DNA of 64,000 nt from the NCBI RefSeq assembly GCF_006345805.1, contig NC_043014.1:868001-932000 (forward strand), in the 5' to 3' direction. Each line of letters begins with the position of its first letter. Positions within the stretch are counted from its first letter, which is position 1. Below the pieces are notes generated by a model. It saw only the letters and a list, made by a program, of their open reading frames with translations, had not been told where the DNA came from and made no database searches. The stretch is from Octopus sinensis (Eukaryota). The translations under genes and the position numbers were made by a program. Shown here one piece after another: positions 11,201 to 58,588 of this stretch.

Positions 11201-12914
11201 CTGTAACAAACAAAACCAAAATCATTAAATGATAAGATTGATTCGATGAAATATTAATTACTAACACAGGCACAAAATTTAAGGGGAATGATGTAACTGA
11301 TTAAATTGACCCCAGTATATTACTGATACTGTGTTCTAATGACCCGGCAAGAAGAACAGTAGAATTAGCCCTTTTGATACCAACCTGCCTGAGACCACTC
11401 TGGTTCTGTGATACAAACTTTCGGTTTTAAAAGGATTTAAATCAAAATCTTCCAACAAAATTCTGTGCAAGTTTATTTTCCCAGAAACCGGATAAATAAC
11501 AACAAAGTTACTTTATAAAATTCTTCATTATTTTGAAAATTAATTGAAACAAAGGCGGTGAATCTCATTATGGTAACGAGAGGATTAACTTTGATGAGAT
11601 GTGAAGTCAGAAAATAAAGGACATAAGAAGACAGCACAAGACATTTTGTTTAGTGCTCTACCGATTCTGTTCAATCCAGGGAGATGTTTGTTTTATGTCT
11701 GTAAATAATTAAAGAAATCACAGACAAAGTATGAGACATAGAAAGCAAGTCCTCGTTTTGGGGCTTCGAAGGACAAGCTTTAGTAACATTCAATGTTGAG
11801 ATAAACTGTGTGCAAGGGTTTCAAATCCCAGTTGGCCCTATTTTGCTTGATAAACATCATGGGGAAAGAATGAACACCAGCCGATGCCATAACTGGTTTA
11901 TCCTTAAAAGAAAGACACGAGAAGAAGATAGTTACCTGAGTGGGTTGATGAATGTGTCCACCTGACATAACGCCATGGACCTGAGGCTGGGTGGTCATGC
12001 GATTGGCTGTGGTCACATGAGTCATTCTGTTGTGGGTGTGGCTGTGTACGTTCTGTTTTGTGTGTGTCATAACAGTTGTATTAGGCACCGAACACATGGT
12101 CTGAACCCGGATCACTTCAGGAGGAGGGGGACGCACCCCATCAATGGACATTTTATTCATGTAGAGAGAATGCCTCAACAGAGGTAAACTTTTCTGCAAA
12201 TATACAAAATATATAAATATATAGATATTGTGGGGGGTGGGGGAAAGAAAGAGAGGGACAAACATAGAGTTATATAGGCATGGAGATGGGAAGAAGGATG
12301 TGGGAAGGTGGACAAGGGGATGGACAAACAGAGACAATGGTGAGGTGGTAGGAGTGGACAGACCAGATATACATAGACGAGACACAAAGAAAAGGAACTG
12401 GGAGAGATTTGACCTGTTTTCCATCTCCACTGCTGCCACCATACACACTCACACACACAGATGTCTACGATGGACATTAAGCACCAAACATGACTGCCAA
12501 GAAGGCACAATTCTCCCCTGTACTTAATAAACAGGGGGTCTGAGTCAAGGATTAGATTGCTGGCAAGTTGTAAGACAAGAAAGGGTCCGCTAAAATTCAG
12601 GGGCTTCATGTAATTCATCAAATACAACACAAAAACACACACACACACACAATTGGAAAAAATGTTGTTTGAGAACAGTGAAACTTATACTGTTTCCATT
12701 AAAATGCATTTGTCATATTTTAAGTTTACATACATGTATGGGCATGTGTATGAGTGTGTGTGTGTGTGTATGAGTGTGTGTGTGTGTGTGTATGAGTGTG
12801 TGTACATACACATTCATTTTAGCATGTTTTTGCTAGCAAGACTTGGAATGTTTTTCTTGTCACCAAGTTAGGAACTTTTTATTTCTTCACAGAAAATTTG
12901 AACAAACAACAACA

Positions 12915-27900: not shown

Positions 27901-29945
27901 GTGCCACGTATCAGAGGTGGTTTCACATACTAGAGTAGCACAGTCAATGGTGGGGCCCCAGCATGGCCGCAGCTTTTGGGTTGAAACATTTTTAAGGATT
28001 TAGGGACATATATATATATATATATATATAAAGGTAAGATCCAAGGATCGAAGTGTAGGAAGTTAGTAAGCTTCGAGCAAGCTGTAGAAGATATAAAAAA
28101 CAGCTTTCAAGAACAAATGGTGGTTTAAAATGTTTGATAAGCTGAAAAACTTATTTTATCATCTACGGTTATCAGCTGGGGTTGCTGTGTATGAGAATAA
28201 AAATCCAAAATTAGAAAATGGAGTTGATAAAATCCATGCTACATATGTTTTATAGCTAAAGGAAATTCGGAAGTAGTAATTACCCAAACAAGGGGTAATC
28301 CCCTAGCTACTCATTGGGCCAAAGATACCTTAATCAAATGAAGTTTCCATTGCCATCAAAGGATCCCATATTAACTTGCAAAACATACACACACACACAT
28401 CATCATCATCATCATTTAACATCCATTTTCCATGCTGACATGGGTTGGACAGTTTGACCGGGGTTTGGTAAGCCAGGAGGCTGCACCAGGCTCCAGTCTG
28501 ATCTGGCAGTGTTTCTACAGCTGGATGCCCTTCCTAACGCCAACCACTCCACGAGTGTAGTGGGTCCTTTTTACATGCCACCGGCACAGAGGCCAGAGGA
28601 GGCTGGCAATGGCCACAGTTGGTTGGTGCTTTTTACGTGCCACCGGCATGGAAGCCAGTCAAGGTGGCGCTGGCATCGGCCACGTTTGTATGGTGCTTTT
28701 TACGTACCATCAGCACAGGTATCACAACTACAATTTCCATTTGATTTTTACTTTGATGTTGATGTACTTGACACAATAAGTCTCCTCAAGCACAGCAGGT
28801 CACCCTATGATCCAAGGTAAGCACAGTAGGTCGTCCTACGATCCAAAGTACTTTGAATGGGCTGGAGCTGGTTATGTGAAGTTGGTGTAGGATACGCCGT
28901 GGACTAACTTTATCGGGTATCATCACTGTCATTTCAGCATCTATTTTCCCCTGCGTCCATGCTTCCCTGCAGCCAATTTCTATTTATTTCCAAGCAATGT
29001 AATATTATACTATGGCCAGACATGTTTTTAGAGAATACTGGAAATGAATGACACTGCTTATATGACAGTGACACTCACAGACATATGTATATGTATATAT
29101 GCATGTATGTGTTTATATATGTATGTATGTGTTTATATATGTATGTATGTAGCTGTATATGAATAAAGACAGCTGCATGAAGAGGTGTCAATCTCTAAAT
29201 GTGAAGGGAACTTGTGGAAGAGGAAAGCCTAGGAAGACATGGGACAAAGTGGTGAAAAATAATCTTTGGATATTGTGCCTCATAGAGATGACAAAGGACC
29301 AAGACAATAGGCAATTTGGTGTGCTTGAGAAGATCCATCCAGCTAAATAAAACTGAGGCCAAAAAGTTATGCCCTGTTATGTCCATGTTCTTACATGGAA
29401 TCTGTCCCAGACAAGCCTCTCTTCCACATCCCATGATGATATTGATAATATGTGTGTGTGTGTACGATGGGATGCTGAAAAGTTATCACAGCAGTCCTTC
29501 AGTTTTTCTAAGCCCTGTAAAAGTACTTGGAGGGTTGGGCTTCCAACCAGGCCTTTTGTGATACCTTTAAAGTGAGGAACTTTTCAGCCCTCCTTTGAAT
29601 GTATGTGTGTGTGTGTATATATGTGTCTTCATACACACACACACACACACACACAATGGGCTTCTTTCAGTTACTGCCTATGGTAATCCACTGACAAGGC
29701 ACTTTGGTTAGCCCAAGGCTATAGTCAAAGACACAGGCCAAAGGTGCCCCACGGAGGGACCAAACTCAAAACCATGTGACTGGGAAGCAAACTTCTGACA
29801 GGCATCAATGGAGGAGAATATTGCATTGAAAGAGAGATTTTAACTTATTTGTTTTTTAAAAGTTCTGAAATTCAAAATGAACTAAAAAGAAAAAATAAAA
29901 GAAAATGGAAAATTCCTGTTGGCTTTATTGAATTTCATTCAATTA

Positions 29946-29995
<50 letters not shown>

Positions 29996-30358
29996 GTATA
30001 TATAGATAGATAGATAGATAGATAGTGCCTCACTGTCACTTGTGCCGGTGGCACGTGAACAAGACATTCGAGCGGGGTCGTTGCCAGTGCTGCTGGACTG
30101 GCTCCTGTGCAGATGGCACGTAAAAGACACCATTTCAAGCGTGGCCGTTGACAGTACAAGACTGGCCCTCATGCCAGTGTCACGTAAAAGCACCCACTAC
30201 ACTCTCGGAGTGGTTGGCGTTGGGAAGGGCATCCAGCTGTAGAAACTCTGCCAGATCAGATTGGAGCCTGGTGCAGCCATCTGGTTCGCCAGACCTCAGT
30301 CAAATTGTCCAACCCATGCTAGCATGGAAAGCGGACTTTAAATGATGATGATGATGAT

Positions 30359-30402
<44 letters not shown>

Positions 30403-30766
30403 TGTATATATAGATAGATAGATAGATAGATAGTGCCTCACTGTCACTTGTGCCGGTGGCACGTGAACAAGACATTCGAGCGGGGTCGTTGCCAGTGCTG
30501 CTGGACTGGCTCCTGTGCAGATGGCACGTAAAAGACACCATTTCAAGCGTGGCCGTTGACAGTACAAGACTGGCCCTCATGCCAGTGTCACGTAAAAGCA
30601 CCCACTACACTCTCGGAGTGGTTGGCGTTGGGAAGGGCATCCAGCTGTAGAAACTCTGCCAGATCAGATTGGAGCCTGGTGCAGCCATCTGGTTCGCCAG
30701 ACCTCAGTCAAATTGTCCAACCCATGCTAGCATGGAAAGCGGACTTTAAATGATGATGATGATGAT

Positions 30767-30810
<44 letters not shown>

Positions 30811-33800
30811 GATAAAGACAAACAGATATTGATTTCCTCTTCTGTTTGGGATAAATTAAATTTTATTTTAAATTCCAAGCTGGGCCCTCACTAAAATAAC
30901 AATAATGATAATTTAAAATTTCAAAGAAAAAAAAAATGCTTTTCCCAATCCATGGTTGGTGAAAACAATACAATTGCTTTTCTAGATTCTAGAAAATAAT
31001 CCATTATATTTATGGCAGAATTACAACAATTCCAGTGGATTGTGTTTTGTATCTGTCTCAGTAAATGGGACAGCAGAATGTCAGTCTAGCACAACTAACA
31101 TTTCCAGATGATCTCTTACAGATTACTCACAGCCAAGTGAACCAAGACAAGACATTTTCTCTGCTGCTCCACCGCTCCAGCCAACTTGCTGCTAACTCCA
31201 CCACCCCTACCACACACATCTTAAATAGTAATTCCAACTGAAATAAAATTTATACAAACTTTTGAACATCTTTAAATTCAAAATAAACTGTAGACTAATT
31301 TAAAGGTTCCTTTCTCTATGCTCTTTCTTTTAAACCCCCCCCCCCACCACCATCTAGTACTTCTTTCTCTCTTTCCTCCTCACTCTACACTATAACTCAA
31401 CTAAACGAACATTTTTGCATATTCAGGACGAAGCTATACATTTTGACACACACACACACAGATGTCATTGTCATCATTTTTTACCTTTTCTTCTTCCACA
31501 CTGGCACTGACCAAAGCAAATTTTGTCAGACAATATTCAAGACCCAGACCCTCTTCCTGACCTCAACACTTTTTATTTCAGTTACAGTTTTTTTTATTCT
31601 CAGCCTTCACACGTTGAACACCTGCTGGGCAGTTTATTTAAGGGAGACATATACAGGATGTTCTGCCTAAATTTGAAGATTTTTTAATGTCTCCCTTTCC
31701 CAGAAACAGCCTGAAGAGTCAACAGCGTTGGAGAGCATGAAGATTAAAATTGTAGCTGAGAAAAAGTCAGTTGATGTGGAGGACTGGAAGACATCTGAAT
31801 ATTGGAAAAGAGTTCCTTGTATCCTGATGGTTGGCAGCAGGAATCAAAATACCAGCATCATGTCTGCTGCCCAATGTTCTGTGAACTGTAAGAGGTGTGA
31901 CGGACAGCTGCAACAGAGACTACAAAGCCATGGCCAGCAGGAAGGGGATGGTCTTTGGACATGTTCCCAGCATGCCACCTCACATATTTGAACAGGGCCT
32001 TAGGCTCAGATGGCTAAGTGAAACTGATGGAGATTGTGATCAACTCCTGGCTGGAGAGGGTTGTTGATGGAATGTGATATCTGTGGTCTGATTAATAAGT
32101 ATCTGGACTGTTGCCATAGTAATGAAGTCAAAGCACACAGAGTGAAGCCACTTGGCACAAATTGACCTTGAACTCTGCTATCCATGTGAACTAAGTTTTA
32201 ATGTTCTAGCTCACTTCTGCTGTTTACAGCAGTGCTTGGAAGGAAGGTGTGTAGCATGTGATCATTGCATTGATCAAGACAGAAAGTTGAGCAGAGAATC
32301 TGCATTAAATTTTGCCAAAAGCTTGGTGATACCTGCTCAGAGGCCTATGCAAAGTTTTCAAAAATATTTTCATCATTCTCAGCAGAATCAAGGAGATCTT
32401 GTGCAACTGAAACCCGAGTGTCTTTTTGGCCAGCTGAAAGCAGTTTTGGCACAAACTTGGCAGACACGCATCTCATGCACAAATCTTCAGTGATAATGGA
32501 CTGGACTGAACCGTAACTAATCTGCACATCCTTTGATAACTCACAGATGGGGATTCGACGATTTCCCCTCCCAGCTGCACACGCATCTGCAATGTTTTTC
32601 TCAGTTCTGCTGGTTGCAGGTCTCCCAGAATGTTCATCAATATCGACATTTTTTTGGCCATCTTAGAAACATCTGAACCACTCATACACTTGTGTGTGGC
32701 TCATACATTCCTTTCCATACACTTTCTGCAACTTTGCATAGGCCTCTGAGCAGGTATCGCCGTGACAACTTTCTCTGTCAAGGTAACTGCGACAATCACA
32801 TGCTACACCCCTTCCTTCCAAGCACTGCTGTAAACAGCAGAAGTGAACTAGAATGTAGAAGCTTAGTGCACATGCACAGCAGAGTTCAAGGTCAATCTTT
32901 GCCAGGTGGCTTCACTCTATAAGCTTTAGCTTTGTTACTATGGCAACAGTCCGGATACTTATTGATCAGATCGTCGTTTAATCATCGTTTAACATCCGCT
33001 TTCCATGCTAGCATGGGTTGGATGGTTCACCTGGGGTCTGGGAAGCCAGAAGGCTGCACCAGGCCAGTCAGATCTGGCAGTGTTTCTACAGCTGGATGCC
33101 TTTCCTAACGCCAACCACTCCGTGAGTGTAGTGGGTGCTTTTTATGTGCCACCAACACAGGTGCCAGACGAGGCTGGCGAACAGCCATGCTCGGATGGTG
33201 TTTTTTACGTGCGACCGGAATGGAAGCCAGGCGAGGCTGGAAAAAAGTCCGAAGTGGTTGTTGGAGAATTTCTATAACTTCACCAACCCCAATTGAAATC
33301 TCATGGATTATCATGTGGGATGTGCAGCTGAGAAAGATAGCAGCTGTTCTGCTTGCAACACCAAAGTCGAGTTGCTGGTCAGGGTCAAGGAGGTGTTCAA
33401 AGATGTCCCTAGGCACATAATGAGGAATGCGTGTGCCAGCTTCCGGAGCCTTCTTGAGGCCATGGCAGAAGCTGAGTGCAATTACTCTTACCTTCCAACC
33501 ATAATTTTCTGAGTTTTAAAAATACATTCATTTCTGGATGGGATGTTGTATTTTCTTTTCCTTTTACGCAAACTATCAAATTTAGATTGAACACCCTGTA
33601 TATAGCTACTGCTGAAATGGTATTCAAAGATATTAAGGTGGCGAGCTGGCAGAATCGTTAGCACGTCGGGCGAAATGCTTAGTGGTGTTTTGTCTGCCAC
33701 TATGTTCTGAGTTCAAATTCCACCGAGGTCAACTTTGCTTTTCATCCTTTCGGGGTCGCTAAATTAAGGACCAGTTACGCACTGGGGTCGCTTCTAACCG

Positions 33801-38016: not shown

Positions 38017-40227
38017 CACACTGAAATACGAACTGATGTAGTGAAATAAGTGTTTGCTGTAGTATTTTGATGTTGTTTAACCTGTTTTCTGGCAGTCACA
38101 CTTTCGGACTTTAATGTCAGGCTAAACTTAAAACTTGGATTCACTCTGTCAAAATACTTCAGCATCTTTCACAAACAGCGAATAAGAATCTTTCAGAGAT
38201 GAGAGGTTTTCGATCAGTAGTCATAACAATATCGATAATGATGATGATGATGGTGATGAAGATAAGTGTAAAATCGATCCCGCGAATATGTGAAAATGTT
38301 CTTGAATAACATCTGAGGCTGGGTGGAATATTTGAATATTCGAAAAGATAAAGATTGGAGCAGATCGAGTGGAACTGATGTGAGTCGGGGATATTAGGGG
38401 GAGGAGATGTTCTGGGTCCTGTTTTGATAATGGCATTGGTGTGTGTGTGTAAAGGAACAAGGAACAGTGGCAATTACTGTGTGTATACGCGTATCTGTAT
38501 ATATGTGTGTGTGTGTGTAAGGGAACAAGGAATAGCAATAATCTGAACAATAATAATCTTCAAAGAGAAGAAGGAGAGGAGCAAAAGATGAGGTGGGGAG
38601 GGCGATAAAGAGAGCAACAAGTAAACAAATGGTACTTTACCGTTCCTCCTGGTCGTGGGGCGATGTTGATCTGTTGTGATGGTTGTGAAGTATTTATACG
38701 AACCGCCCCTACACGGTTGTTGGTCGTTTTGCCAAGACTTCCAGCATTTACGGTTAGAGCTCGAGATGTGTGGATATTCTGATTGTTCAGAGTTACAATT
38801 CTCATTTGGGTGGCATTATTGGTGAGTATTTGAGGTTGAACCATGCTGACTTGAGGTTGGGTTCGTGAAACTGTGATGACATTAGGGTTGACTTGTTGAG
38901 ACAAACCCTTCACTATGTGTACGTTCTGTAGATTCTGCTGTGTTGAGGTGACAACAGACGAGGTGACACGGGCCATCGTGTCCCTAGAACAGGTTATCTC
39001 TGTTTTAGGTGATGCTGTGGTGATATTACGTGTTGTATCCTTAATAACAAAGTGGCCAGTACTTTGATCGGGTTTCATAATTGGTGTTGAAGTAACTGGT
39101 GGAGTCGTGGTGGTGGTAGTTGTAATCTTCTGTCCTCCAGTTTTGTCCTGCCTCTGGTCAATCTGCTCGCGGACAGTCATTCGATTAGCAGTTTGCATTG
39201 ACTTAGTCTGTTGGACAGTCATATGTGGGACCATCAGAGGTTTCCGTTCGGCGGCAATTGTAGCCAGATTATAAATAGCACTGTTTGTTGTTTGGTTCGT
39301 TTGGTTGGTGACCACGCCGGAGGTAGCAGTGTTTTTCTGCACAGCTGTTGCCGCTCCATTACTGTCTGTCGTTACAACTTGATGCTGGACAGGTTGTGGT
39401 TGAGTTGGTCCCAGTGGCCTCGCAATTGGATGTACATAGGGAACATTTGGGTTCGAGTTGTTGGTGTTTGCAACCGACGATGTTTGAGTAATGATTCGAA
39501 TTGTCTGTGTATTTCCGATTTTGCCGCTGTTGGTTGGGATTTGCACAGTATTTGGAGTGTTAACATTCAGTAGAGAGACACCACTTGCTCCTGGTACGGT
39601 AGTAGCTCCACAAGCAGGTGACCCAGTGCCAACTACACCACCGGCTCCAGTGCCCGTTACTGTCGCGTTTGTAGGACTTAGGATGGAACTGATGCCGATA
39701 ATTTGGGTATCCATAGGTGCTTTGGAAATTGGTGCTGTGTTTTTGTTCATTTGGGGTCCGCCTGCTGTTACCAAGGGGATGCCCTTCTGTCCTTGACTGA
39801 CAGCCTGGATAGATGCGAATGGGGCACTGACGGTGGACGAAGCGGGTTGCGATGACGCTGCCACAGTCACGACGGTGGGGGCCGTGGCAGGACCGATTCC
39901 CAGGTTTGCTCCGACACACGATGTAGCAGTGTTGTTGATGTGATTGGTGCCAGTCGCTCCGATACCAGTTGTATTTCCAGTGCTTTTCGTGGCACCACTT
40001 CCACCAACATTGCTATTGCTAGTAGCACCAGAATTCCCGTTGCTCCCAACACGGTCCGTCGTCGCAGGAGCAGTAATGGGAACAACTACACTGTCCGATA
40101 CATCCTGCGACGACTCCTTGTGGGTAGGCGAGGCCAGCCTCGACTCTAGGCTCCCAACTAAGGCACTTACTTCGTTCTCGTCCACCTCAGACGACAACAA
40201 TTCCTCGATTGAGTTGGTGGCCGCCAT
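2841..40227 (-). CDS. TAF4: TFIID subunit 4 (TAF4), gene span; 14 coding exons, 3492 nt, about 1163 aa
   Basis: N-terminus MAATNSIEELLSSEVDENEVSALVGSLESRLA, TAFH domain, DDDDINDVA..GVNL + histone fold, and C-terminal RPRIKRVNLRDL all match the TAF4 family. All 13 introns are GT-AG and the phases join into one open frame ending in TGA. Confidence 0.97.
3851..4325 (-). mobile_element. RTE-LINE 3' UTR repeat with (GAT)n tail and several GTGCCnnnGGCAC monomers
   Basis: Family motif ggatgcccttcctaacgccaacc; about 10 similar copies in the window. Confidence 0.75.
5335..5391 (-). CDS. TAF4: TAF4 exon 13 (TGSSTSLTNGGVSSSSVRP)
   Basis: ttgcag / gtgagt, 57 nt, phase 0-0; S/G-rich linker, weak homology support. 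Confidence 0.75.
6374..6484 (-). CDS. TAF4: TAF4 exon 12 (LQLAEMEEMRQREANITALAAIGPRKKRKTEAGDSNQ)
   Basis: tctcag / gtact, 111 nt; AN.TALAAIGPRKKRK motif. Confidence 0.96.
6615..6671 (-). CDS. TAF4: TAF4 exon 11 (SRSKHEDPEQLKLKQKAKE)
   Basis: ttacag / gtaag, 57 nt; EDPEQL.LKQKAKE motif. Confidence 0.95.
6724..7106 (-). mobile_element. Full-length tRNA-derived SINE (tRNA head, CORE-like segment, internal microsatellite, CR1-type tail)
   Basis: Head gcaggagtggctgtgtggtaag...ggttccgggttcagtccc (A/B-box-like); near-identical copy at 52098-52468. Confidence 0.8.
7447..7602 (-). mobile_element. Degenerate 5' half of the same tRNA/CORE-like SINE
   Basis: agacacttgctcaaggtgcc...gattgaacctgaaaccatgtg; similar heads at about 29655-29800, 33905-34055 and 34535-34670. 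Confidence 0.65.
8300..8560 (+). mobile_element. RTE-clade LINE ORF C-terminal remnant
   Basis: LLQIERLQLRCYGQEIRM...RGQARRRWWD resembles RTE QLRW.GH..RM...RGRP..RW.D. Confidence 0.6.
9265..9390 (-). CDS. TAF4: TAF4 exon 10 (MDSRYEVKNDVRSILKHFEELERLEKKRHEEQEREMLLRVAK)
   Basis: tccaag / gtttgt, 126 nt, phase 0-0. Confidence 0.94.
9550..9680 (-). CDS. TAF4: TAF4 exon 9, histone fold (KKYGVEEVPSDVANIVSHATQERLRDFIEKLS)
   Basis: acacag / gtaag, 131 nt, phase 1-0. Confidence 0.95.
10609..10778 (-). CDS. TAF4: TAF4 exon 8 (DDDDINDVATMGGVNLSEE...CKDECFL)
   Basis: tttcag / gtaag, 170 nt, phase 2-1; start of conserved region II. Confidence 0.96.
10941..11200 (-). CDS. TAF4: TAF4 exon 7 (TIIKQVCPGG...KRKYESL)
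   Basis: ttacag / gtaag, 260 nt, phase 0-2. Confidence 0.9.
11365..11588. mobile_element. MITE with TTAA-CCCT-type termini (piggyBac-like)
   Basis: ttagcccttttgatacc ... ggtaacgagaggattaa, imperfect terminal inverted repeats. Confidence 0.5.
11936..12193 (-). CDS. TAF4: TAF4 exon 6 (KSLPLLRHSL...HQPTQ)
   Basis: ttgcag / gtaac, 258 nt, phase 0-0; end of TAFH helix. Confidence 0.92.
13142..13231 (-). CDS. TAF4: TAF4 exon 5, TAFH part 2 (DGKVDPESFTEKLQIELQSSPQPCLVPFLK)
   Basis: ttctag / gtaag, 90 nt, phase 0-0; SSPQP.LVPFLK motif. Confidence 0.95.
13693..14108 (+). mobile_element. CR1-clade LINE 3' end
   Basis: NTRGHIYKVRKQHSSHDFRKHFFTLRVAEAWNKLP motif, followed by 3' UTR and (ATT)n tail. 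Confidence 0.85.
14166..14383. repeat. 218-bp foldback (long inverted repeat), probably MITE-like
   Basis: Arms gtaaagattgtttgccaac...gatctgt and acagatc...gttggcaaacaaactttac are near-perfect reverse complements around a loop of about 16 nt. Confidence 0.85.
14460..14667. mobile_element. MITE, TTAA-flanked, CCCTTTAGC-type termini
   Basis: ttaatcctttatcattcag ... aacgctaaagggtttaa; second copy at 45905-46092. Confidence 0.65.
14750..15032 (+). mobile_element. CR1-clade LINE 3' end (second family)
   Basis: GHSEKLYLRRFHLNRRRGAFSV.V..PWNKLPDEIV; (TTAAC)n tail; near-identical longer copy at 18035-18400. Confidence 0.85.
15930..16057 (-). CDS. TAF4: TAF4 exon 4, TAFH/NHR1 domain part 1 (DNVRKCKNFMATLLKLASNQRPETIFNVRELIQGLI)
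   Basis: ttttag / gtaagt, 128 nt, phase 1-0; classic TAFH motif. Confidence 0.95.
16260..16655 (+). mobile_element. Tc1-like transposase N-terminal remnant
   Basis: Frames give ELSDFQRGCIVG and HLHQLGYYGWVA...QPAKIQRR, typical of the Tc1 HTH region; disrupted. Confidence 0.65.
16716..16960 (+). mobile_element. tRNA-derived SINE (different family)
   Basis: ggttgagtggttaggg...gagttcgattcc (A/B box) then tgtgtccttgagcaagacacttt. Confidence 0.65.
18035..18400 (+). mobile_element. CR1-clade LINE 3' end, same family as 14750-15032
   Basis: LRGHSEKLYLQQFHLNQRRGAFSIWVANPWNK; (TAAC)n tail immediately beside TAF4 exon 3. Confidence 0.85.
18456..18693 (-). CDS. TAF4: TAF4 exon 3 (PMCNQGQPRQ...SNVLP)
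   Basis: tttcag acceptor, A|gtaag donor, 238 nt, phase 0-1, open Q/T/P-rich frame. Confidence 0.88.
19430..19640 (-). mobile_element. RTE LINE ORF C-terminal remnant
   Basis: TCGRGRP...DIVKADLKMLSLAREMMKDQD; similar to 29155-29350. Confidence 0.6.
19695..19859 (-). CDS. TAF4: TAF4 exon 2 (NAITLPTSIQLQPGTVLVKNEQGQLVLVH...QNVK)
   Basis: ttctag acceptor, AAG|gtaag donor, 165 nt, phase 0-0; resembles the vertebrate LPPGMVLVRSENGQL segment. Confidence 0.9.
20845..21462 (+). mobile_element. RTE-clade LINE reverse-transcriptase fragment
   Basis: PWKLLYADDLALIAES; RIRIAWAKFRKLLPLL...YDACVRTAMLHGSETW. Confidence 0.9.
21490..24270 (-). mobile_element. RTE (BovB-like) LINE, near-complete degenerate APE-RT ORF
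   Basis: IGCWNLRT, VSVYAPTM, DFNARVG, WHILDYILVR (APE); NYRGISLLS, GVKRGDILAPALF, MYADDC (RT); many frameshifts and stops. Confidence 0.93.
24400..26990 (-). mobile_element. CR1-clade LINE, degenerate APE-RT ORF with 3' tail
   Basis: ALIETHL, MGDFNFP (APE); QHGFRPGRSCLTQLL, YLDFAKAFDKV, GVPQGTVLGPLLF, YADNTK (RT); tail cagcatggccacagctctcagctgaaac. Confidence 0.93.
27262..28000 (+). mobile_element. 5'-truncated CR1 LINE, same family as 24400-26990, opposite orientation
   Basis: SNDASFQVH; IYIWKILEGLVPNFGI; CNSLGFRGLQLFNILPK; tail cagcatggccgcagc. Confidence 0.9.
28398..28800 (-). mobile_element. RTE-LINE 3' UTR repeat with (GAT)n tail, long copy reaching the ORF end
   Basis: Family motifs plus gctgtgcttgaggagac (minus, 28780-28796), matching the RTE ORF terminus at 29318-29334. 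Confidence 0.75.
29155..29350 (+). mobile_element. RTE LINE ORF C-terminus
   Basis: MNKDSCMKRCQSLNVKGTCGRGKPRKTWDKVV. Confidence 0.8.
29994..30809 (+). repeat. Exact tandem duplication of a 408-bp unit (RTE 3' UTR copy + flanking microsatellites)
   Basis: Identical ORF translations at 30148 and 30556; gtgcctcactg at 30025 and 30433. Confidence 0.92.
32083..32974 (-). mobile_element. Internally deleted mariner element with TIRs of about 40 bp, nested in the element above
   Basis: gtctgattaataagtatctggactgttgccatagtaa vs ttactatggcaacagtccggatacttattgatcaga; ISYGSVQSIITEDLCMRCVSAKFVPKLLS. Confidence 0.85.
32975..33240 (-). mobile_element. RTE-LINE 3' UTR repeat copy
   Basis: cgtttaacatccgctttccatgctagcatgggttgg...; abuts the mariner TIR. 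Confidence 0.75.
33637..33856 (+). mobile_element. tRNA-derived SINE with Deu/Nin-like central domain
   Basis: ggcgagctggcagaatcgttagc head; gagttcaaattcc B box; tttcatcctttcggggtcg..aaattaag.accag core. Confidence 0.75.
34192..34525 (-). mobile_element. Degenerate RTE-LINE 3' UTR repeat copy
   Basis: catcatcattcaatgcccatgctggcatggg...ggatgcctttcctaacgccaacc. Confidence 0.65.
35040..35196 (+). mobile_element. Deu/Nin-like SINE fragment (CpGs decayed)
   Basis: gagctcaaattccaccaaggttgaccttacctttcatccttttggggtcaataaaataagtaccag. Confidence 0.7.
38641..40227 (-). CDS. TAF4: TAF4 coding exon 1 (529 aa; conserved N-terminal motif, then T/S/G/N/Q-rich low-complexity region)
   Basis: ORF 38560..40227; donor ACG|GTAAAG at 38640, phase 0. 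Confidence 0.93.
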
Positions 40228-40525
40228 TTCGTTTGCTTCGTCGATGGACGACTAAAGAGCGCATGCGCAGTGACCCGGTTGAACCCTGAGATTTGTGTAT
40301 AAAAGACATCGAGCGCCACCTTGCGGAGAGTACAGTGTTACATTGTCGCCATCTTGAGAGATATTTTAGTTTGGGGAGAAGAAAGTCGACTGCTTTGAGC
40401 TCTCTCTCTCTCGAACCGCAACACCACTGGACCCACGACCACCCTCTTTTAATAGCGTTGGGCTCAACGGACAGGCAGACTAAAATTTGTTGGAGAAAAC
40501 TGCGAAAGCGAACCGTGAGAGAACC
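40228..40525. promoter_or_regulatory. Bidirectional promoter / 5' UTRs between TAF4 and LSM14 (298 bp between ATGs)
   Basis: Divergent ATGs at 40227 (-) and 40526 (+). GCGCATGCGC 40259-40268, TATAAAAG 40298-40305, CTCF-like CCGCAAGGTGGCGCT (minus) 40312-40326, CGCCATCTT 40347-40355; CpG-rich. Confidence 0.85.
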
Positions 40526-40649
40526 ATGAGTGGAGGAGGTATTCCGTATCTGGGCAGCAAGATAAGCCTGATATCGAAGGCTGAGATACGTTATGAAGGC
40601 ATTCTCTACACCATCGACCCCCACGAATCCACTGTTGCTCTCGCCAAAG
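40526..40649 (+). CDS. LSM14: LSM14 exon 1 ([41 protein letters not shown])
   Basis: accATGA start, AAAG|gtaac donor, 124 nt, phase 1. Confidence 0.96.
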
Positions 40650-41309
40650 GTAACCCAACACTCCTTTCTTTACTCTACACTTCACTATCAAACACCCATT
40701 GAAGAATCCAACCCAAATACTGGCCATCCCCTCCGACTGGTCTCTTTATTTCTTTGGCGCCGTGAGGAATGGTTTCCCCTTTTTCACAATTTTACTTTGT
40801 TATTTATGTTTGTCTTCACTTCCGCCTTATCCATGTGTCTCGCTGAATTAACCTTCCAATTTCCCCATTTTGCATGCGTGGTGGTGGCCAGCGAATTAAA
40901 CATCCCGCGTTATGTGGAGTCAGGAATTAAACCTCCATTTTACCGCGTTATACATGTGTCGAGGTGGCCAGGCATTTCGCCTCCACTCTACCCGCTTCTA
41001 TATATGTGTATATATGTGTGTGTGTGTGTATATATATATGTGTGTGTGTGTGTATATATATATGTGTGTGGTGTGTATATATATATGTGTGTGTGTGTGT
41101 ATATTATATATGTGTGTGTGTGTGTATATATATATATGTGTGTGTGTGTGTATATATATATATGTGTGTGTGTGTGTATATATATATATGTGTGTGTGTG
41201 TGTATATATATATGTGTGTGTGTGTGTATATATATATGTGTGTGTGTGTGTATATATATATATGTGTGTGAGTGTGTGTGTGCTTGCTCCTCCACTTTAC
41301 CCGCTTCTA

Positions 41310-41350
<41 letters not shown>

Positions 41351-44300
41351 TGTGTGTGTGTGTGTTTGCTCCTCCGCTTTACCACGTTAACACATGGGTG
41401 TGTGGTGCTTGTGAAATATTTGACTCCCATGTATTGCATGTGGGGGTAAGAAGCGAACTCCCCTCCACACACACACGTGTGTCTGATGGTTAGAGTCAAC
41501 CTCCACCTCACCGAGGTAGACACACATCTCTGGTTCATATTGAAAATAAACCCCCCCTCGTTTCCTCGCGGTTTTTTCTAATGACGAAAACAGCTTTCGG
41601 TTTTATCTTTCCCCAGTAAAATACCTTCACTCGAAATGTTGGATATTCTCTTAGTTTTGCAACATTTGTCAATAAACTCTTCGACCAAACTGTCCTATTT
41701 TCAGTTCCACCCTTTTTTAAAATAGTTTTTCTTTAAAAAGCCAGTTCCCTTTAATTTCTTCAGCTTCTGTCAAAATGTAGCGAACTTTTTTAGAACTGAG
41801 AAAAACCTCGCAATTTCTGTTTTTTTCTCGCTTCCCTCGTTTAACCTGAATGAGAAACTTGTTATATAAATGTCTAATTATATTTAAAAGGCAATTCTTT
41901 ATAAAACAGCAAAAACTGAGCTTTGACTCATTCAAATAAAAGTGTATTTGTGTCTTCTTCCCAGCCACAAACCCGCCATTCACATAGTGAAAGTGTCCTC
42001 GTTCTTTCCCTCTTGTTGACATCTTCTATTGATAAAACGTTGACATGTCATCCGACTATTTATTATTATTTTTATTATTATTTCAGTTTTTCTCTTTGCT
42101 TTCAGCCATGACTAAGCTTAATTGAGCTATTTCACTTTACCAAGACAATGTTTCGTACTTTGCACTTCTCTTCTAGAATTTCCATTTCTCTAACAAAAAA
42201 CCCCAAAAATACTGGAAATAAAATATAACTAAAAAACGAGTTATTTTTATGTCCTATCAACTTCCTCCCGTCTGTATCTCTTTCTCTCTCGCTGTCCATT
42301 TGCTGTGTCTGATTGTCCACGTATGCTGGTTCTATATTCATTGACCAATGCATAATAACTCGTGTCCCAGCCAAGCTTTCCATAAGCTGCCAAAGTCTTT
42401 CATTTTCCTCGAATTTCCTAATAATTGTCTTTTTAATTCCCCCGCCATTTTTATATTGCTTTTTTTAAATCAAGCTCCGACCAAGATTGTGTCTCGCTAA
42501 TTTAGCCGACAACTTGCAGGTATTTTATTTGCCAGGTAATAATATGGCATTCAGAACGTTCCAGGTCGCTTAAAATGTTCAACTTATTTACATTGTGAAA
42601 ATGTCCTCTTCGTTCCTCCTCAAATAGTTCTTTTTCCTGCGCTTTTAATTCATAAAAATAATTTCGTTAAACTCTTTTAGTATTACATTAAACGCCTGCC
42701 TTTGCTTTTAAATGAACTTTTATGTCTATAATATACACACGTATTTAGTTGGCACCTGTCCCGAAAAGCTTTTAAATGTTCACATTTTATGGCGGTTAAA
42801 TGTAAAGATGTTTTCTCCGTTTCATTTTTAAGATTTTAATTTTTAAACATTTTTTTTTTTTTTTTAAACAGTAAGATCTTTTGGTACTGAAGATCGTCCT
42901 ACCGACCGTCCTGTTGCCCCAAGAGATGAAGTTTTTGAATATATAATATTCAGAGGTAGTGACATTAAAGACATCCATGTCTGTCAACCTCCCAAGCCAC
43001 AGCCTTTGCAAGGACTACCGCAAGACCCTGCTATTGTGAAGGTAGGCAGTCTTACCGCGTCACCCTTTTAATTCCTATATTATTTCCATTTCAATTGACG
43101 ATACAGTAACCTCGAAATCTTTTTCTTCTCAGTCATCCCAGCCAGTGACCACCACTTCGTCTTATCCTCAACAACAGCAGCAGCAGCAACAACAGCAGCA
43201 GCCTCAGCACACTTACAGCGGTCAATCTTATCAACCTTTTGGAGGAGCTCAGCTTTATGGCGGTCAGTATCTTCATTCTGGTGGCCAGCATTCCTATCAT
43301 GGTTCTAGCCAATTTTCTCTTCCAGGTAACACCTATTGTGAATGTCTTTCATTATACGCTTAGCTTACTGGAGGAATATCAACAACTGCTGTTTTTAAAA
43401 AAGCGGGCCTTATAACATAACCTAAGGTGTAGCAACTAATTTCTTTTGCCGTTCTAATTAGCAGGAGGCTATCCTAATCAAACTTTTGAAATTGCTTTTA
43501 AATTACTGATTCTCTTGATAGGTTTTATGCTGGTTTCCCAGTGCAGCAATTAAGACCTGCAAAAGTCTTTCTTGGAGCAGTTTCCATTGAGCTGACCCAC
43601 TTCGTACTTTGAAGAGTTTCCCTCATTACTCTTTAGATTTGCATCTTTCACTGATTCTTTTATAATTAGTTAATTGTACGATTTTCTAATCAGCTAAATA
43701 TTTAAATTCCATTTATTTTCAAACTTTTCTCCTCTCTTGCTAAATTTTAACATTTTGATTTTACTGAATTTTTCTTGATATTGTTTTTGAAACCCCAATT
43801 GGATTTGGACCTGAATGTTGGCGTTTGTCAGGTTCCTTTATTCGCAGTTATGCCCGTCATACAACTCGGGACCAAGGCATTCAAGTAGATCCCCAGCAAA
43901 TTAGGAAATCTGGTAAATTGAAGCATTCAGAATCTCACATCACTAATCTTACCTAACTTCTAATCAGTGTGCAGGTGACACACAGGTGAACGACCATGGG
44001 AAATGCCAGTTCTACCAGATTCTGTTGGTTTTTTTTGTAACTTCTAACCATTGTCCCTTTCATTATGGATTTCTTAAATTTTTAACCTGACGTACTAAAA
44101 TGGTTGACTAATTAAAAAAATTTTTTCTTAAATCTTAGTTTACATATAACATGCATACTAATATTCAAATATTAACCATTTAAAAATTTTTCTTACATTT
44201 TTTGAATCTTAATATCTAATCCAACTTTTGGCTTTTGCAAAAGTTCCTGGCTTGAATGGTTGCTTGAGTTTGAAATTCTTCTCTTATAGTTTCTCGTGGT

Positions 44301-47300
44301 CCTACCCCACCTGTTGGGCGCAAATCCCCAACAACTGATCAAGGAACTCAGATCAATGTGGATGACAAGATGCAGCAGCAGCATCAGCATCAGCACCAGC
44401 ACCAGCAGATGTCTCCCACGGATCGTCGAGACAAACGCTACAATAATCAGAAAGATCAGCAAGGGAACCGGACTACAACATTCACTCGTGGACGAGGGGG
44501 TAGAGGTATGTTGCTGCTCTCATTCTCTAATCCCCTTTTTTCCCCTTTGTTCTTTGTCTTTGAAATATTCTGATGTACTTAATGTATTTTGGTAGGGGTT
44601 CCAAGAGGCCGACCCCGAGGAATGTCTCGAGGTATGCCAAGAGGCAGAGGGAACTCCAGACAACCTTCAGAACCTCTCAAATTTGAGAATGACTATGATT
44701 TTGAGAGTGCCAATGCTGAATTTGAAGAAGTGGAGAAGGAGCTGAAGAAGTTAACACTGAGTAAGTAGGATTATTGCTGGGGTTTTTTTCTTTTGTAATA
44801 GGGGTGGGTTATTATTGTTTTTGGAGTAACAGTAATTTAAGTATGAACTTGCCTTACCCACTCTGTCCAATCCTCAGAACCACTTATGTTCACCTTCCAT
44901 TTAACTGATTGGCTTTAGGATGGGCACCCAGCCATAGAAACTGTGCCAAAGCTGATACTGGCATTTGGCACAGCCCTGCCTTGTCAAATTGTTCAGCCCT
45001 TGAAGGATAATTTAAACTTGGGATATTTTTAGGCACATTGACTTGTTCTTGGGTGTTTTGTCTTTTATGAAATTAAATTACTGAATCTGATTGAATTTCC
45101 ACATCCCTATCACCCCAAATGTTGTTGTGCTTTTGCTGCCCTGACTGAGTTTGTCTTTTGACTTTGAAATCTTTTCAGATGAAAAGAATCCCACTCCTAT
45201 TGTGAATGGAGAAAAACCAGAAACTGAAGAGGAACCAGAAGTTCCAAAGAAAGATGTGAAGAAGGATGAAGAAACGGTGTACTATGATAAAACCAAATCT
45301 TTCTTTGATAACATCAGCTGTGAGGCAACTGAGCGTGAACATGGGTGAGGAGATTTTCCAGTTTACATCATAATGATCTTCCGTTTTACTGTTTGCCAAT
45401 ATAGTCTACAATTGCAGGAATTATTCTGTTTAATCTTTGGCAGTTCTTGTACTAAAATTTGAAGTTGTTTGCTTTAGGGTTAGCTGTTTTAATTAGAAAT
45501 TGTGAGCTTTGTAACTACATTTTTAAATTTAGAGATTTTAGTAAAAAAAAAAAAAATTGCTTAACTATGGAATACAACTAAAGATTAAGACTATGATATA
45601 CTTTGAAATGTTTTTGTGATAAAATTTGTTTGTCAGTTGGACATGAATTTTGCCCAAATCCAATACGATGATTGAATAAATTTTGGTATTTGAATATATT
45701 CTTAGTATTGGAACCAGTTATGGAAGTTATGCGACTTCCTAATTTTTGTCTTCTGAATAGAATTAAATTTTTAAATCCTTTTGAAAATCCTGCAGATATT
45801 TTCCTTCCAATATGAACTTCCTAATTTTCAACATTAAACTGAACCTTTGTCTTCACTCATTGTTTAGAAATGATCTACTTTTAATAATTTCTAAATGTAG
45901 GCCTTGAACCCTTTCTCATTCGGATTACTCTGTCAAATTTGATATTCACATTGATTTAACTTTAGGATTTTGATGCAATTGTGTTTTTAGGACATTGTTG
46001 GGTAGGTGTAGGAGTCCGGATTTTGACAATTTGCACATAGAACAGGTAAACTATTTGGGCTGGATATGGCTGGCCTAAATGCTAAAGAGTTAGTTGTGCC
46101 AGGTGAGATGTTCATTTGTGAAATGGGCCGTAAGCATTTTTGAAAGTCAACACAAAGAATTATATATTTGGCACTTTATTTCAGCACCAACTTGGTCCCT
46201 GCCTGTTTAATTTTCTGGATTTTCATTTTTAAAAAAATAGGATTTAGAACTGCGATATTTTTGTAAATATTTGCATTTGATATCAAAAAAATTATGGTGT
46301 ACTTTTCCATTTGAAATTTAAATTTTTATATTTGTAACTTATTTTCTGAATTTAAACAGCCTTGCAATTAAAAATTAAAGTATTAGAATATCGAAAAACG
46401 TTTGGAACTAATTTCTCTCTGATTGTGAATTGGTTCAATCTTGTTTTAAAACTACATTAAATGCAAATTTGTGCAAATTATGAAGACAGTTATGGAATTT
46501 GAAACTGATTTTAATTATTAAGCAAGGTTTTTTTTTCTCTCCCAGTCGTGTAAATAGAACAAGTTGGCGAGAAGAACGGAAACTTAATGCAGAAACTTTT
46601 GGAGTGTCAGAACGTTATCGTGGTAGGGGCAGAGGCATGAGAGGTCGAGGTGGTTTCCGAGGTCGAAGGGGGAGAGGTAAATATCAGTTTTTTGCCCAGT
46701 GGCTTTTTCAGCTTGTTAATAATGCACTGTATCTGTGCAGACTAATTGATTGGCCATGTTTCTGTCTTCTTTGGCTTTCCATTGAAATAAAATCAATTTT
46801 CGGCCTGTGCTGTACCTACCATTTAAGATGAAATGTAAAATAGTTAACCTTATTTTTAAAAATTCCATGAATTGTAATAACCATTTCAATGTCTGCTGTC
46901 AACATTAAGATAAAAATATTTTTGTTGCAGCTCCTTTTTATCCATCAGGTAGAGGAATGAACCGTGGTAATTACAGAGGAAACTTCCGACGAAATTCCGG
47001 AAATACTGGTTGGGGTGATTCTAGTTGGGCAGATAACCAACACAATGAAGCAAACAACGTAAACGGTGAAAAAGCTCTGAACAAGGTAAACCCCCTTCCT
47101 TTGTCTTCCCCGTTGAGGACTTAAGCTAAATTGAATTTCAATGATTGTTGGATGCGGCAGAGTTTTGTGATTCAGGAATTCAGAAGATCATGGACTGTTT
47201 TCAGCTTAATTCTGAGTCTTGTCAATCTGTAGCTGACCACTGCTTTGTCATTGTGTCATAAATAGTATCTTTTTTGTTTCTTGTAAACTTAATGACCAGA

Positions 47301-47364
47301 AAATGATCATTAAATTAATGTAAATGTTTTTGTCTTACAGAGGCCCATTGCTGTTTTCACCTAA
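40526..47364 (+). CDS. LSM14: LSM14 (RAP55/Trailer hitch/Scd6 family), gene span; 9 coding exons, 447 aa (474 aa with cassette exon)
   Basis: Lsm domain [36 protein letters not shown] (FDF), FFDNISCE (FFD), [10 protein letters not shown] (TFG) and RGG boxes; GT-AG introns join in frame. Confidence 0.97.
41000..41365. repeat. Compound (TG)n(TA)n microsatellite, about 22-24 bp higher-order period, LSM14 intron 1
   Basis: Direct reading; it produces the spurious VCVYIY ORFs. Confidence 0.95.
42872..43041 (+). CDS. LSM14: LSM14 exon 2 ([38 protein letters not shown]...DPAIVK)
   Basis: poly-T aaacag acceptor, gtagg donor, 170 nt, phase 1-0. Confidence 0.96.
43133..43325 (+). CDS. LSM14: LSM14 exon 3 (poly-Q, Q/Y/G/S-rich)
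   Basis: ttctcag / gtaac, 193 nt, phase 0-1; CAA/CAG run. Confidence 0.88.
43832..43912 (+). CDS. LSM14: LSM14 candidate cassette exon ([27 protein letters not shown])
   Basis: ttgtcag acceptor, TCTG|gtaaat donor, 81 nt, symmetric phase 1-1, no stop in the required frame. Confidence 0.55.
44290..44505 (+). CDS. LSM14: LSM14 exon 4 ([22 protein letters not shown]...(QH)n...RGRGGR)
   Basis: cttatag / gtatg, 216 nt, phase 1-1; RKSPT motif. Confidence 0.9.
44596..44760 (+). CDS. LSM14: LSM14 exon 5 (RGG + [15 protein letters not shown])
   Basis: tggtag / gtaag, 165 nt, phase 1-1; FDF motif. Confidence 0.94.
45179..45344 (+). CDS. LSM14: LSM14 exon 6 (acidic linker + [15 protein letters not shown])
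   Basis: tttcag / gtgag, 166 nt, phase 1-2; FFD motif. Confidence 0.95.
45905..46092. mobile_element. MITE copy, same family as 14460-14667
   Basis: gaaccctttctcattcggattactctgtcaaa ... aaatgctaaagagttag. Confidence 0.6.
46546..46676 (+). CDS. LSM14: LSM14 exon 7 ([13 protein letters not shown] + RGG)
   Basis: ctcccag / gtaaa, 131 nt, phase 2-1; TFG motif. Confidence 0.95.
46931..47085 (+). CDS. LSM14: LSM14 exon 8 (RGG/N-rich; alternative in-frame acceptor at 46949)
   Basis: ttgcag or catcag acceptor, AAG|gtaaa donor, phase 1-0. Confidence 0.85.
47341..47364 (+). CDS. LSM14: LSM14 exon 9, last coding (RPIAVFT*)
   Basis: tcttacag acceptor, TAA TAA tandem stops. Confidence 0.75.
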   Translation, partial: RPIAVFT

Positions 47365-57728: not shown

Positions 57729-58588
57729 AATCAAAGTTTCCAGACTAGTTCTGTAGCGTGCCAACAGATGGCAGCACTTTGCGTTGCAAGTGAGAGCTAG
57801 CCGTGACCTTCACGAGGCAGTGTGCTGAGTGATGTCGCTGTGTTTACTTCACAAGTTGTGAAATTTCTGTTTTTGTGATTATGTGTCTGCTGTAGTCTGT
57901 GATTTTGTCATGGACAGGAACAAAGAGCCAGCATGGAATTTTGTGTTAAACTTGGGAAGTCTGTTACAGGGACATTGAGCATGCTTCAGCAAGCTTACAG
58001 CTACGAGACAATGAGTCATGCGCAATGACTCGAGGGTCACGGGTGCTTCAAAAGCGGAAGAATGTTCCTGGAAGACGATGAGCGATCTGGAAGATCTGCC
58101 TGGAGTGTCACCCACGGAAATGTGGTATTGTGCATCCAGAACTTGTCCCCCGGGGCCAGACCATCAGTCGAGAGTTCTACTGTAACATTTTGAAGCAACC
58201 GGATCTGTGGAGCGCGAAAAATAGGGTTCTTCACCGAGCTCTTCCATTCGTCAGTTTCTCGCCCGAAAGAATATGGCATCGCTTTCGCACCCACCCTATT
58301 CCCCAGATTTAGCACCTGCAGACTTTCATCTCTTCCCCAAGATAAAAATGCTGCCCAAAGGTCGCCGTTTTAACACCTTTGTCGAGATCCAGAGTGAATC
58401 TCAGAAGGTCCTCGACTCGCTTACGGAAAACGACTTCCAGGCCGGATCCCTAAATTGGCGGGAACTTTGGGGCTGGTGTAGTTCTGCGCAGGGTGACTAT
58501 TTCGGAGGGGATGATGTTTAAACGTGGGTAAATGAGTTATTTTCTATTAAACATAACTAATTCAGGAACTTTTTGATACTATCTCGTA
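57729..58588 (+). mobile_element. Mariner transposon remnant (internally deleted)
   Basis: VKLGKSVT.TLSMLQQAY; ELVPRGQTISREFYCNILK; HPPYSPDLAPADFHLFPKIK (mariner YSPDLAP-D); 3' TIR ggaactttttgatactatctcgTA; partial 5' TIR at 57729-57750. Confidence 0.88.

Follow-up and report, generated by a model that had tools for sequence, protein, structure and literature searches.

A conserved alternative exon of LSM14 in Octopus sinensis and its candidate LC8 docking motif

We have analyzed a window of 64,000 nucleotides (nt) from the genome of Octopus sinensis (NC_043014.1, positions 868,001-932,000), and the coordinates given below are window positions unless stated otherwise. The LSM14 gene in this window contains an 81-nt cassette exon (43832-43912) which is, almost certainly, a real and conserved alternative exon. 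LSM14, of the Scd6/RAP55/Tral family, is a scaffold of translationally silent messenger ribonucleoproteins (mRNPs) and processing bodies (P-bodies), and of stored maternal and neuronal mRNPs. The best explanation for the finding as a whole is that the conserved cassette adds a docking motif for LC8 (DYNLL), with splicing tuning the self-association of LSM14, and we give this explanation about an even chance. Cassette-containing LSM14 may thus be listed, with modest interest, as a candidate for a splice-regulated short linear motif and as a candidate LC8 client.

As the alignments show, the 5' part of exon 4 was very probably duplicated in tandem in a mollusc ancestor into a separate, alternatively used exon, which cephalopods retain. 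In the proposed mechanism, inclusion would bring RDQGIQVD, a high-quality motif of the GIQVD class of LC8 docking sites, into the linker that separates the LSm and FDF domains and is predicted to be disordered, and there an LC8 dimer would hold two LSM14 chains together. A weaker constitutive motif 30 residues downstream, TDQGTQIN, would add avidity. Splicing would in this way set the LC8 cross-linking of LSM14, and hence the self-association of LSM14 and its mRNPs. Effects on LSM14 dimerisation, on granules or condensates, and on transport might follow.

The LSM14 Gene and its Cassette Exon

The gene model was rebuilt from reading frames and splice sites, with the ATG at 40526 (Table 1). Its exon-skip product is identical at every residue to XP_029647917.1 ("protein LSM14 homolog B isoform X1 [Octopus sinensis]"), and by this identity the gene of the window is the orthologue of annotated LSM14. 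The inclusion isoform has 474 residues. An N-terminal Scd6-like Sm (LSm14) domain (Pfam PF12701, E 6e-32, residues 7-80) also matches the LSm domain of LSM14A in PDB 6f9w (E 1.6e-43), and is predicted by AlphaFold2 (AF2) as five strands with a predicted local distance difference test score (pLDDT) of about 80-87. An FDF domain (Pfam PF09532, E 3e-12) covers residues 290-393, and NDYDFE, SFFDNIS, ETFG, and RGRG/RGG runs are readable in the translation. The protein has, accordingly, the same LSm domain, FDF, FFD, and TFG boxes and RGG repeats as the LSM14/Scd6/RAP55/Tral/CAR-1 family. The solved structures of this family are those of the LSm domain (6f9w, 2fb7, 2vxe) and of FDF-TFG (6f9s), and the linker box discussed below lies outside them.

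The exon upstream of the cassette ends at 43325 (CCAG/gtaa) with one codon base left over, and therefore the cassette is of phase 1-1 and the frame is kept with inclusion or skipping; both products are open and end at the same stop. The cassette acceptor is ttgtcag/G at 43831/43832, its donor CTG/gtaaat at 43912/43913, and the next exon starts at 44290 (ttatag/TT). A preliminary description of the window, made from the letters alone, had reported an 81-nt phase 1-1 exon with these splice sites together with the peptides of the cassette and the next exon, all of which the sequence confirms. The same description regarded the exon as open only in the needed frame. This is correct for the plus strand, on which the needed frame alone is open across the cassette, but one frame of the minus strand is open too. 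The open stretch containing the cassette overruns both splice sites (43768-43953), and an open frame of 27 codons is expected by chance with a probability of about 0.27 by our own arithmetic, so that openness alone is not remarkable. The exon is lifted above chance because its 81-nt orthologues are under constraint, an identical peptide is present in RefSeq, and spliced cuttlefish transcripts contain it.

The exon had also been called unannotated-looking. This is right for the present genome, since the O. sinensis models (X1 and X2) omit it, and the gene models of Argonauta hians and Acanthosepion pharaonis have no entry for it either. It is not new to databases, however, because isoform X1 of Octopus bimaculoides has it, and in abalone, oysters, and mussels its homologue appears among the annotated alternative isoforms. 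Close to the cassette, exon 3 has an alternative donor, used in X2 of O. sinensis, in X3 of O. bimaculoides, and in short forms of cuttlefish, so that two or more splice choices, independent of each other, lie side by side in the linker.

Conservation and Transcripts in Relatives

In the 90%-identity cluster of the O. sinensis LSM14 protein, we found RefSeq isoform X1 of O. bimaculoides (XP_052831098.1, 469 amino acids), which has the same 27 residues at the same junctions, while X2 and X3 are without them. In each of the genomic loci of O. bimaculoides, Argonauta hians, and the cuttlefish Acanthosepion pharaonis, an open exon of 81 nt lies between exon 3 and exon 4 and keeps the borders AG/G…CTG/GTAAA; its exact length and phase are thus shared by four cephalopod genomes including that of the window. 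The cassette peptide reads GSFIRSHGRHATREQAVQVDLKNFRKS in Argonauta and GSLIRSHGRMTTIDQGVQVDAQQIRKS in cuttlefish. The ratio of nonsynonymous to synonymous substitution (dN/dS), obtained by Nei-Gojobori counts with synonymous sites saturated or nearly so, is 0.20 between octopus and Argonauta and 0.26 between octopus and cuttlefish.

Two cuttlefish contigs assembled from RNA-seq data in Logan (SRR8281664 and SRR8281669) encode a contiguous inclusion isoform of 475 residues, and one inclusion contig, when mapped to the genome of the cuttlefish, resolves into ten exons, of which the cassette lies at 4678-4763 of the locus. Two other cuttlefish contigs skip the cassette; that of SRR3011300 maps as nine exons, with exon 3 joined to exon 4. 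Because contigs with and without the cassette are present, cuttlefish both include and skip the orthologous exon in vivo. Junction evidence and conservation in other cephalopods and molluscs were among the checks proposed in the preliminary description, and both have turned out in its favour: junctions for inclusion and for skipping are found in a relative, and the exon is present in the Argonauta, Acanthosepion, and O. bimaculoides genomes, with homologues in gastropods and bivalves. A query of 67 residues centred on the cassette gave no candidates, and the representatives of the 90% clusters are without the cassette, so that this search added no octopus transcript evidence. The splice sites, the purifying selection, isoform X1 of O. 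bimaculoides, and the cuttlefish transcripts establish the exon as a genuine LSM14 cassette.

Origin by Duplication of the Neighboring Exon

Exon 4 opens with a conserved box (unit B), of which the cassette (unit A) is very probably a duplicate, as judged by alignment. The consensus of the box is GSRGPxPxxR[KV]SPTxDQGxQ[VT], and units A and B stand next to each other in cephalopods, abalone, Gigantopelta, oysters, mussels, scallop, pearl oyster, and a unionid; outside the cephalopods, the genera include Haliotis, Ostrea, Mytilus, Argopecten, Pinctada, Sinanodonta, and Gigantopelta. For example, Haliotis has GSRGPTPTLTRVSPTMDQGVQVSPWQPVRKS followed by GSRGPTPPPNRKSPTSDQGTQVSS, and Ostrea has …NRASPTVDQSIQVGSQQAIRRP followed by GSRGPTPPNVQSNRKSPTLDQGTQMSP. 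Unit A is the sole difference between isoforms X1 (XP_046550531.1) and X2 of Haliotis rubra; in Ostrea edulis and Mytilus californianus it is present in some isoforms and absent from others, and in genomic open reading frame (ORF) fragments of bivalves unit A is a discrete exon. The isoforms that contain it (X1 of H. rubra, X1/X2 of H. asinina, X3/X4 of O. edulis, and X1 of M. californianus) agree with the octopus cassette in gene, intron position, and alternative use.

The cephalopod cassette aligns to unit A, with the initial G-S and the core T.DQ..QV as invariant columns, and is thus the form taken in cephalopods by an old alternative exon of molluscs. While the O. bimaculoides X1 cassette peptide is identical to that of O. 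sinensis over all 27 residues, the homologous unit in other molluscs is 31-36 residues long and reads GSRGPSPxxNR[VIA]SPT[MV]DQ[GS][IV]QV…. In cephalopods, the N-terminal half has diverged, GSRGPSP…R[VIA]SPT being replaced by GS[FL]IRS…R.TT; the C-terminal half is kept as TxDQG[IV]QVD…Q.[IF]RKS, with D at +2 completing a full GIQVD or GVQVD. An octopus-specific or new exon, which we also considered, is rejected, since the exon is mollusc-wide and is present in RefSeq for O. bimaculoides.

Outside these groups, one annelid locus (Ridgeia) and one heterobranch snail locus (Biomphalaria) were examined. The Ridgeia locus has an intron of about 420 nt at the cassette position and no unit A. In Biomphalaria, the exon equivalent to the cassette (locus 8370-8459) reads GSTRESSPGVDSTTVQTNRTAPIGTRPVAG, and in Aplysia, Elysia, Plakobranchus, and Candidula the equivalent core has changed to …EQM[NP]R…. 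Heterobranch cassettes keep SPG[IV]D, and their core has gone from DQG[IV]QV to …SSEQMPR… or …VEQMNR…. Among them only Biomphalaria has a VQT anchor in the cassette, and its unit B has VQA. A profile search of a collection of 5.8 billion proteins with the two-unit alignment returned just eight short ORF fragments of bivalve exons and did not recover even the query proteins; the candidates were probably crowded out by low-complexity words, and the search accordingly does not map the spread of the exon beyond molluscs.

Several further variants of the linker were observed in this comparison. A pair of box-like units is also present in two LSM14 proteins from Logan/JGI (…RRSPALKTGPHQM… followed by RRSPTADQGVQTSA in one, RCSPTMDAGVQTIG followed by RRTPTDQQHLQQ in the other), and because of these the duplication of the box may be wider than molluscs, or recurrent. 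Some oyster isoforms have an extra insert, EKHELEDHDSFGL[DE][LF]E, encoded by a micro-exon and located between units A and B or replacing unit A, which makes a third alternative piece of the linker. The Argonauta hians model contains an extra TPALVPVSLIETVSD after …KKLTL that is absent from the octopus proteins and may be a further alternative exon or a retained intron.

Fit to LC8 Docking Motifs

Published rules for LC8 sites and the corresponding training sets were taken from Jespersen et al. (2019; PMC6607443). According to these rules, the anchor is Q at position 0 with mid-sized hydrogen-bonding or hydrophobic residues at -1 and +1; in the flanks, -4 is preferably polar (Asp) and -3 large, bulky aromatic side chains are avoided at -2, and D, E, or P is preferred to a hydrophobic residue at +2. 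Validated binders listed there include rat nNOS (KDTGIQVD), DNMT3A (KDLGIQVD), DLGAP1 (LSIGIQVD and QSVGVQVE), and ATMIN (ISTGVQVN), and among them RSP3 (TDAITQIE) and ICE1 (RHIGTQIS) bind through a TQI anchor. The earlier statement that the cassette carries a sequence of the GIQVD type is borne out. RDQGIQVD is identical to the nNOS and DNMT3A sites at six of eight positions and agrees with every published preference, with D at -4, Q at -3, G at -2, the I-Q-V anchor, and D at +2. The constitutive TDQGTQIN agrees with the preferences at -4, -3, and -2, and its N at +2 is neutral.

For scoring, we used our own log-odds matrix built from the 79 binders of Table S4 (PMC6607443), a crude re-implementation distinct from LC8Pred. 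Percentiles among binders are leave-one-out values, 32 anchor-containing non-binders were used for comparison, and the distributions of binders and non-binders overlap. RDQGIQVD scores 13.3, at the 35th percentile of binders and above 81% of non-binders, and its flanks taken by themselves score 8.4, exceeding all 32 non-binders. A score of at least 13.3 has a chance of 3.7e-5 per random 8-mer of linker composition, or about 7e-4 per 27-residue peptide. The cassette motifs of cuttlefish (IDQGVQVD) and Argonauta (REQAVQVD) score 11.3 and 8.1, respectively, and TDQGTQIN scores 10.7 (18th percentile of binders).

In an AF2 run with a 60-sequence alignment, residues 100-282 had a pLDDT below 50 (29-39) and no secondary structure, with values of about 80 for the LSm domain and the FDF helix, so both motifs lie in predicted disorder. 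A single-sequence run was low everywhere, even in the LSm domain, and hence uninformative on disorder; the alignment-based run was used. The conserved glutamines of the cassette and constitutive motifs are 30 residues apart in cephalopods and 31-36 in other molluscs, and the 30-residue spacing is inside the range of 11-49 for validated multi-site clients (Table S4, PMC6607443). Paired LC8 sites are known to bind cooperatively (PMC10046861). The idea that splicing switches LSM14 from one LC8 site to two holds in so far as two Q-centred motifs stand 30 residues apart in a disordered region; it presumes that TDQGTQIN is an LC8 site, and this motif falls in the lower fifth of binders.

With the GIQVD class of nNOS, DNMT3A, and DLGAP1/GKAP, the cassette shares the G-I-Q-V-D core, D at -4, a basic residue at -5, and a predicted-disordered setting. 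These three have direct binding data and T, L, or M at -3, whereas the LSM14 cassette, a predicted site, has Q at -3. The DLGAP1 motifs are 25 residues apart, and the LSM14 inclusion isoform likewise has two [IVT]Q[VI] motifs, the second of which differs from the GIQVD class in its rarer TQI anchor and neutral N at +2. Tandem Q-centred motifs in disordered regions, with a spacing of 11-49, are found also in ASCIZ/ATMIN, Nup159, Chica/FAM83D, and Bassoon; LSM14, unlike these multivalent clients, has just two candidate sites, one of them weak, and their number would be set by splicing instead of being fixed. Splice-regulated LC8 sites are exemplified by the Bim isoforms (BimL/EL versus BimS) and by exon B of myosin Va, in which an alternative exon supplies or removes the docking sequence. 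These are proteins of other pathways than LSM14, whose LC8 docking is a sequence-based prediction.

The Linker Box in Bilateria

The box of exon 4 is found across Bilateria in the form GSRGPxPxxR[KR]SPTx[DE]Q[GA][TV]Q[VT]. Among 60 bilaterian LSM14 sequences, conservation of 90% or more within the linker is confined to R-K-S-P-T and to a single Q six residues on, so that unit B forms a conserved island in a linker that otherwise varies freely. The box reads RRSPTMEQAVQTAS in LSM14A of birds and turtles, RKSPTLEQGVQTAS in frogs, RKSPTVEQGTQVSE in amphioxus, and RRSPTADQGVQVSG in a centipede. The vertebrate EQAVQT, which the preliminary description had given for the RKSPT position of human LSM14A and LSM14B, agrees with the bird and turtle sequences. 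The human counterpart is presumably SPTMEQAVQTAS.

Positions in unit B were counted from the conserved Q (0) in 111 LSM14 sequences, which are not independent of each other. Acidic residues (D or E) occupy -4 in 98% of these sequences, and Q occupies -3 in 80%; at -1, T or V is found in 96%, and at +1, V, T, or I in only 62%. In unit A, the [IV]QV anchor is kept in all cephalopods, vetigastropods, and bivalves seen. No published function of the linker box was found in the literature searched.

Discussion

Several observations weigh against the proposed explanation or limit it. The transcript and isoform evidence for inclusion comes from relatives and not from O. sinensis itself. Matrix-based predictions of LC8 sites are error-prone, only 7 of 19 predicted peptides having bound (PMC6607443). 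The vertebrate MEQAVQTA has a non-binder-like score of 3.1, and both it and LEQAVQAP are at or below the 1st percentile of binders; human LSM14A and LSM14B are found neither in the list of 374 LC8Pred proteome hits nor in the other supplements of PMC6607443. In unit B, the residue at +1 is A, M, H, S, or Q, atypical for LC8, in 38% of the 111 sequences, and the strongest constraint in the family, on RKSPT and Q0, is unlike an LC8 pattern. The anchor is lost in most heterobranch cassettes, and Elysia is without an LC8-compatible anchor in either unit. In the searchable literature, no paper links LSM14, RAP55, Tral, or CAR-1 to LC8, and there are co-mentions alone: Dynll2 and LSM14B co-purify in the Xenopus vg1 ribonucleoprotein (RNP) and in L-bodies (PMC8861640), which is co-occurrence only, and they are listed separately in a viral proximity screen.

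Taking both sides together, we lean slightly towards binding of the cassette peptide to LC8 in vitro, and find it rather doubtful, though plausible, that recruitment of LC8 is the biological purpose of the exon. For the cephalopod cassette, LC8 docking is a reasonable prediction that can be tested cheaply; for the family-wide box, it is a weaker one. It appears unlikely that the box, as R[KR]SPTx[DE]Q[GA][TV]Q[VT], is an LC8/DYNLL site throughout Bilateria, with LSM14 as a core client whose valency (one or two) is tuned by splicing in molluscs and whose extra copy has been sharpened to GIQVD in cephalopods.

The drift at +1 and the poor vertebrate scores mean that the box may serve another partner. 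In this explanation, the exon is real and R[KR]SPTx[DE]Q[GA]xQ serves that partner as a docking or phospho-regulated motif, or else is a proline-directed kinase site together with the context for its recognition; the likeness to LC8 sites is incidental, and the cassette doubles the valency for the other partner. It would account for the constraint on RKSPT and Q0, for the drift and the vertebrate scores, and for the loss of the anchor in heterobranchs, whose cassettes keep SPG[IV]D instead. Moreover, RKSPT lies outside the 8-residue motif of the LC8 groove, the position essential for LC8 at +1 is the least conserved of the box (its commonest residue occurs in 0.2 of the sequences), and several snail versions also score like non-binders. 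On the other hand, no such partner is known, and the solved LSM14 complexes involve the LSm domain and the FDF-TFG region only. The cephalopod cassette has lost the RxSPT half and keeps the LC8-like DQG[IV]QVD under purifying selection, positions -1 and -4 of unit B follow the preferences of LC8, and unit A keeps [IV]QV in three classes of molluscs. We regard another partner as the main alternative, though less likely than LC8.

It is improbable, to a still greater degree, that the real exon acts without any specific docking by altering the length or composition of the linker, for example in the tuning of condensates, with the motif as a remnant of the duplication. The predicted disorder, the free divergence of the N-terminal half of the cephalopod cassette from GSRGPSP…SPT, the divergence of heterobranch cassettes in the motif itself, and the existence of other small alternative pieces (the donor at 43262 and the oyster micro-exon) would all suit such a spacer. 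It is opposed by the low dN/dS values, obtained with synonymous sites saturated or nearly so, by the fact that octopus and cuttlefish both keep D-Q-G-[IV]-Q-V-D and the trailing RKS and that [IV]QV persists from cephalopods to bivalves, and by the exact length and phase shared by the four cephalopod genomes. A chance open stretch between an intronic AG and GT has also been considered, since roughly one in four such stretches is expected to be open, the gene models of three species lack the exon, and the pyrimidine tract at its acceptor is weak (ggcgtttgtcag). We reject this with next to no reservation. It is refuted for the cuttlefish orthologue by spliced contigs from two runs with the exact junctions, and it disagrees with the RefSeq isoform of O. 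bimaculoides, with purifying selection and conserved splice sites, and with the homology to annotated alternative exons of gastropods and bivalves.

The LSM14 models of O. sinensis, Argonauta hians, and Acanthosepion pharaonis miss a conserved coding exon that is supported by transcripts in cuttlefish, and this isoform should be added. The comparison has also marked out a sharply conserved short motif in the LSM14 linker, the copy number of which is set by splicing in molluscs and the extra copy of which resembles a strong LC8 site in cephalopods. Should LC8 bind, the dimerisation of LSM14 would come under the control of splicing, and perhaps the assembly of granules or a coupling to dynein-associated complexes as well; should it not bind, the box would still be a sign of some other partner of LSM14. 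If the box were an LC8 site throughout Bilateria, the LSM14-DDX6-4E-T silencing scaffold would be physically and directly connected to the LC8 dimerisation hub, and this would explain the co-purification of Dynll2 with LSM14B in localising oocyte RNPs.

Feature Coordinates and Other Observations

Table 1. Positions of LSM14 features in the window and of orthologous cassette exons in the loci of relatives.
Feature	Position	Strand	Remarks
LSM14 coding region	40526..47364	+	10 coding exons with the cassette, 9 without
LSM14 exons outside the cassette, part 1	40526-40649, 42872-43041, 43133-43325, 44290-44505	+	
LSM14 exons outside the cassette, part 2	44596-44760, 45179-45344, 46546-46676, 46931-47085, 47341-47364	+	
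Exon 3	43133..43325	+	Q/G/S-rich linker; ends in phase 1 (…SQFSLP G/gtaaca)
Alternative 5' donor within exon 3	43262/43263	+	GGCG/gtcagt; 63 nt upstream of the main donor; removes 21 residues
Cassette exon (unit A)	43832..43912	+	81 nt, phase 1-1; 26 residues between split codons (G) and (V)
LC8-like 8-mer RDQGIQVD	43867..43890	+	positions -5 to +2; anchor IQV
Constitutive exon 4	44290..44505	+	opens with the conserved box of 24 residues (unit B); probable source of the duplicated cassette
Second, weaker LC8-like 8-mer TDQGTQIN	44334..44357	+	anchor TQI; in constitutive exon 4
Orthologous cassette exon, O. bimaculoides	4990-5070		locus coordinates
Orthologous cassette exon, Argonauta hians	4662-4742		locus coordinates
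Orthologous cassette exon, Acanthosepion pharaonis	4681-4761		locus coordinates

Head-to-head with LSM14, a minus-strand ORF of 563 codons (MAATNSIEELLSSEVDENE…) is located at 38563-40251. In alignment it corresponds to a region of the O. bimaculoides locus in which the gene has been called as TAF4. The head-to-head pair of TAF4 and LSM14 is present also in Argonauta, Acanthosepion, the annelid Ridgeia, and the snail Biomphalaria, and because the same pair recurs across these animals, an old shared promoter region is suggested. The cuttlefish contig of SRR8281664 (5788 nt) contains, besides the intron-free LSM14 inclusion mRNA, an upstream ORF of 1173 residues on the opposite strand that runs off the end. 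Judged by its position, this ORF is likely to be TAF4, and the contig may represent overlapping divergent transcripts or an assembly chimera.

In Biomphalaria glabrata, the LSM14 exon for DLSGQARGPSRGGP…LKFDTEFDFETSNA is present twice (locus 9649-9780 and 11418-11600) with 93% protein identity, and this duplicated FDF exon is possibly a mutually exclusive pair. Elsewhere in the window, two identical copies of the same open stretches (30018-30342 and 30426-30750) form a tandem repeat with a period of about 408 bp. Transposon remnants were recognized by eye from ORF translations at about 58015-58518 (+), about 32270-32920 (+/-), and 27403-27930 (+); two of them are like mariner/Tc1 transposases (…YSPDLAPADFHLFPKIK… and …IKFCQKLGDTCSEAYAKF…), and one resembles the tail of a non-long terminal repeat (non-LTR) retrotransposon. 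Microsatellites of the (CA)n type are common throughout the window.

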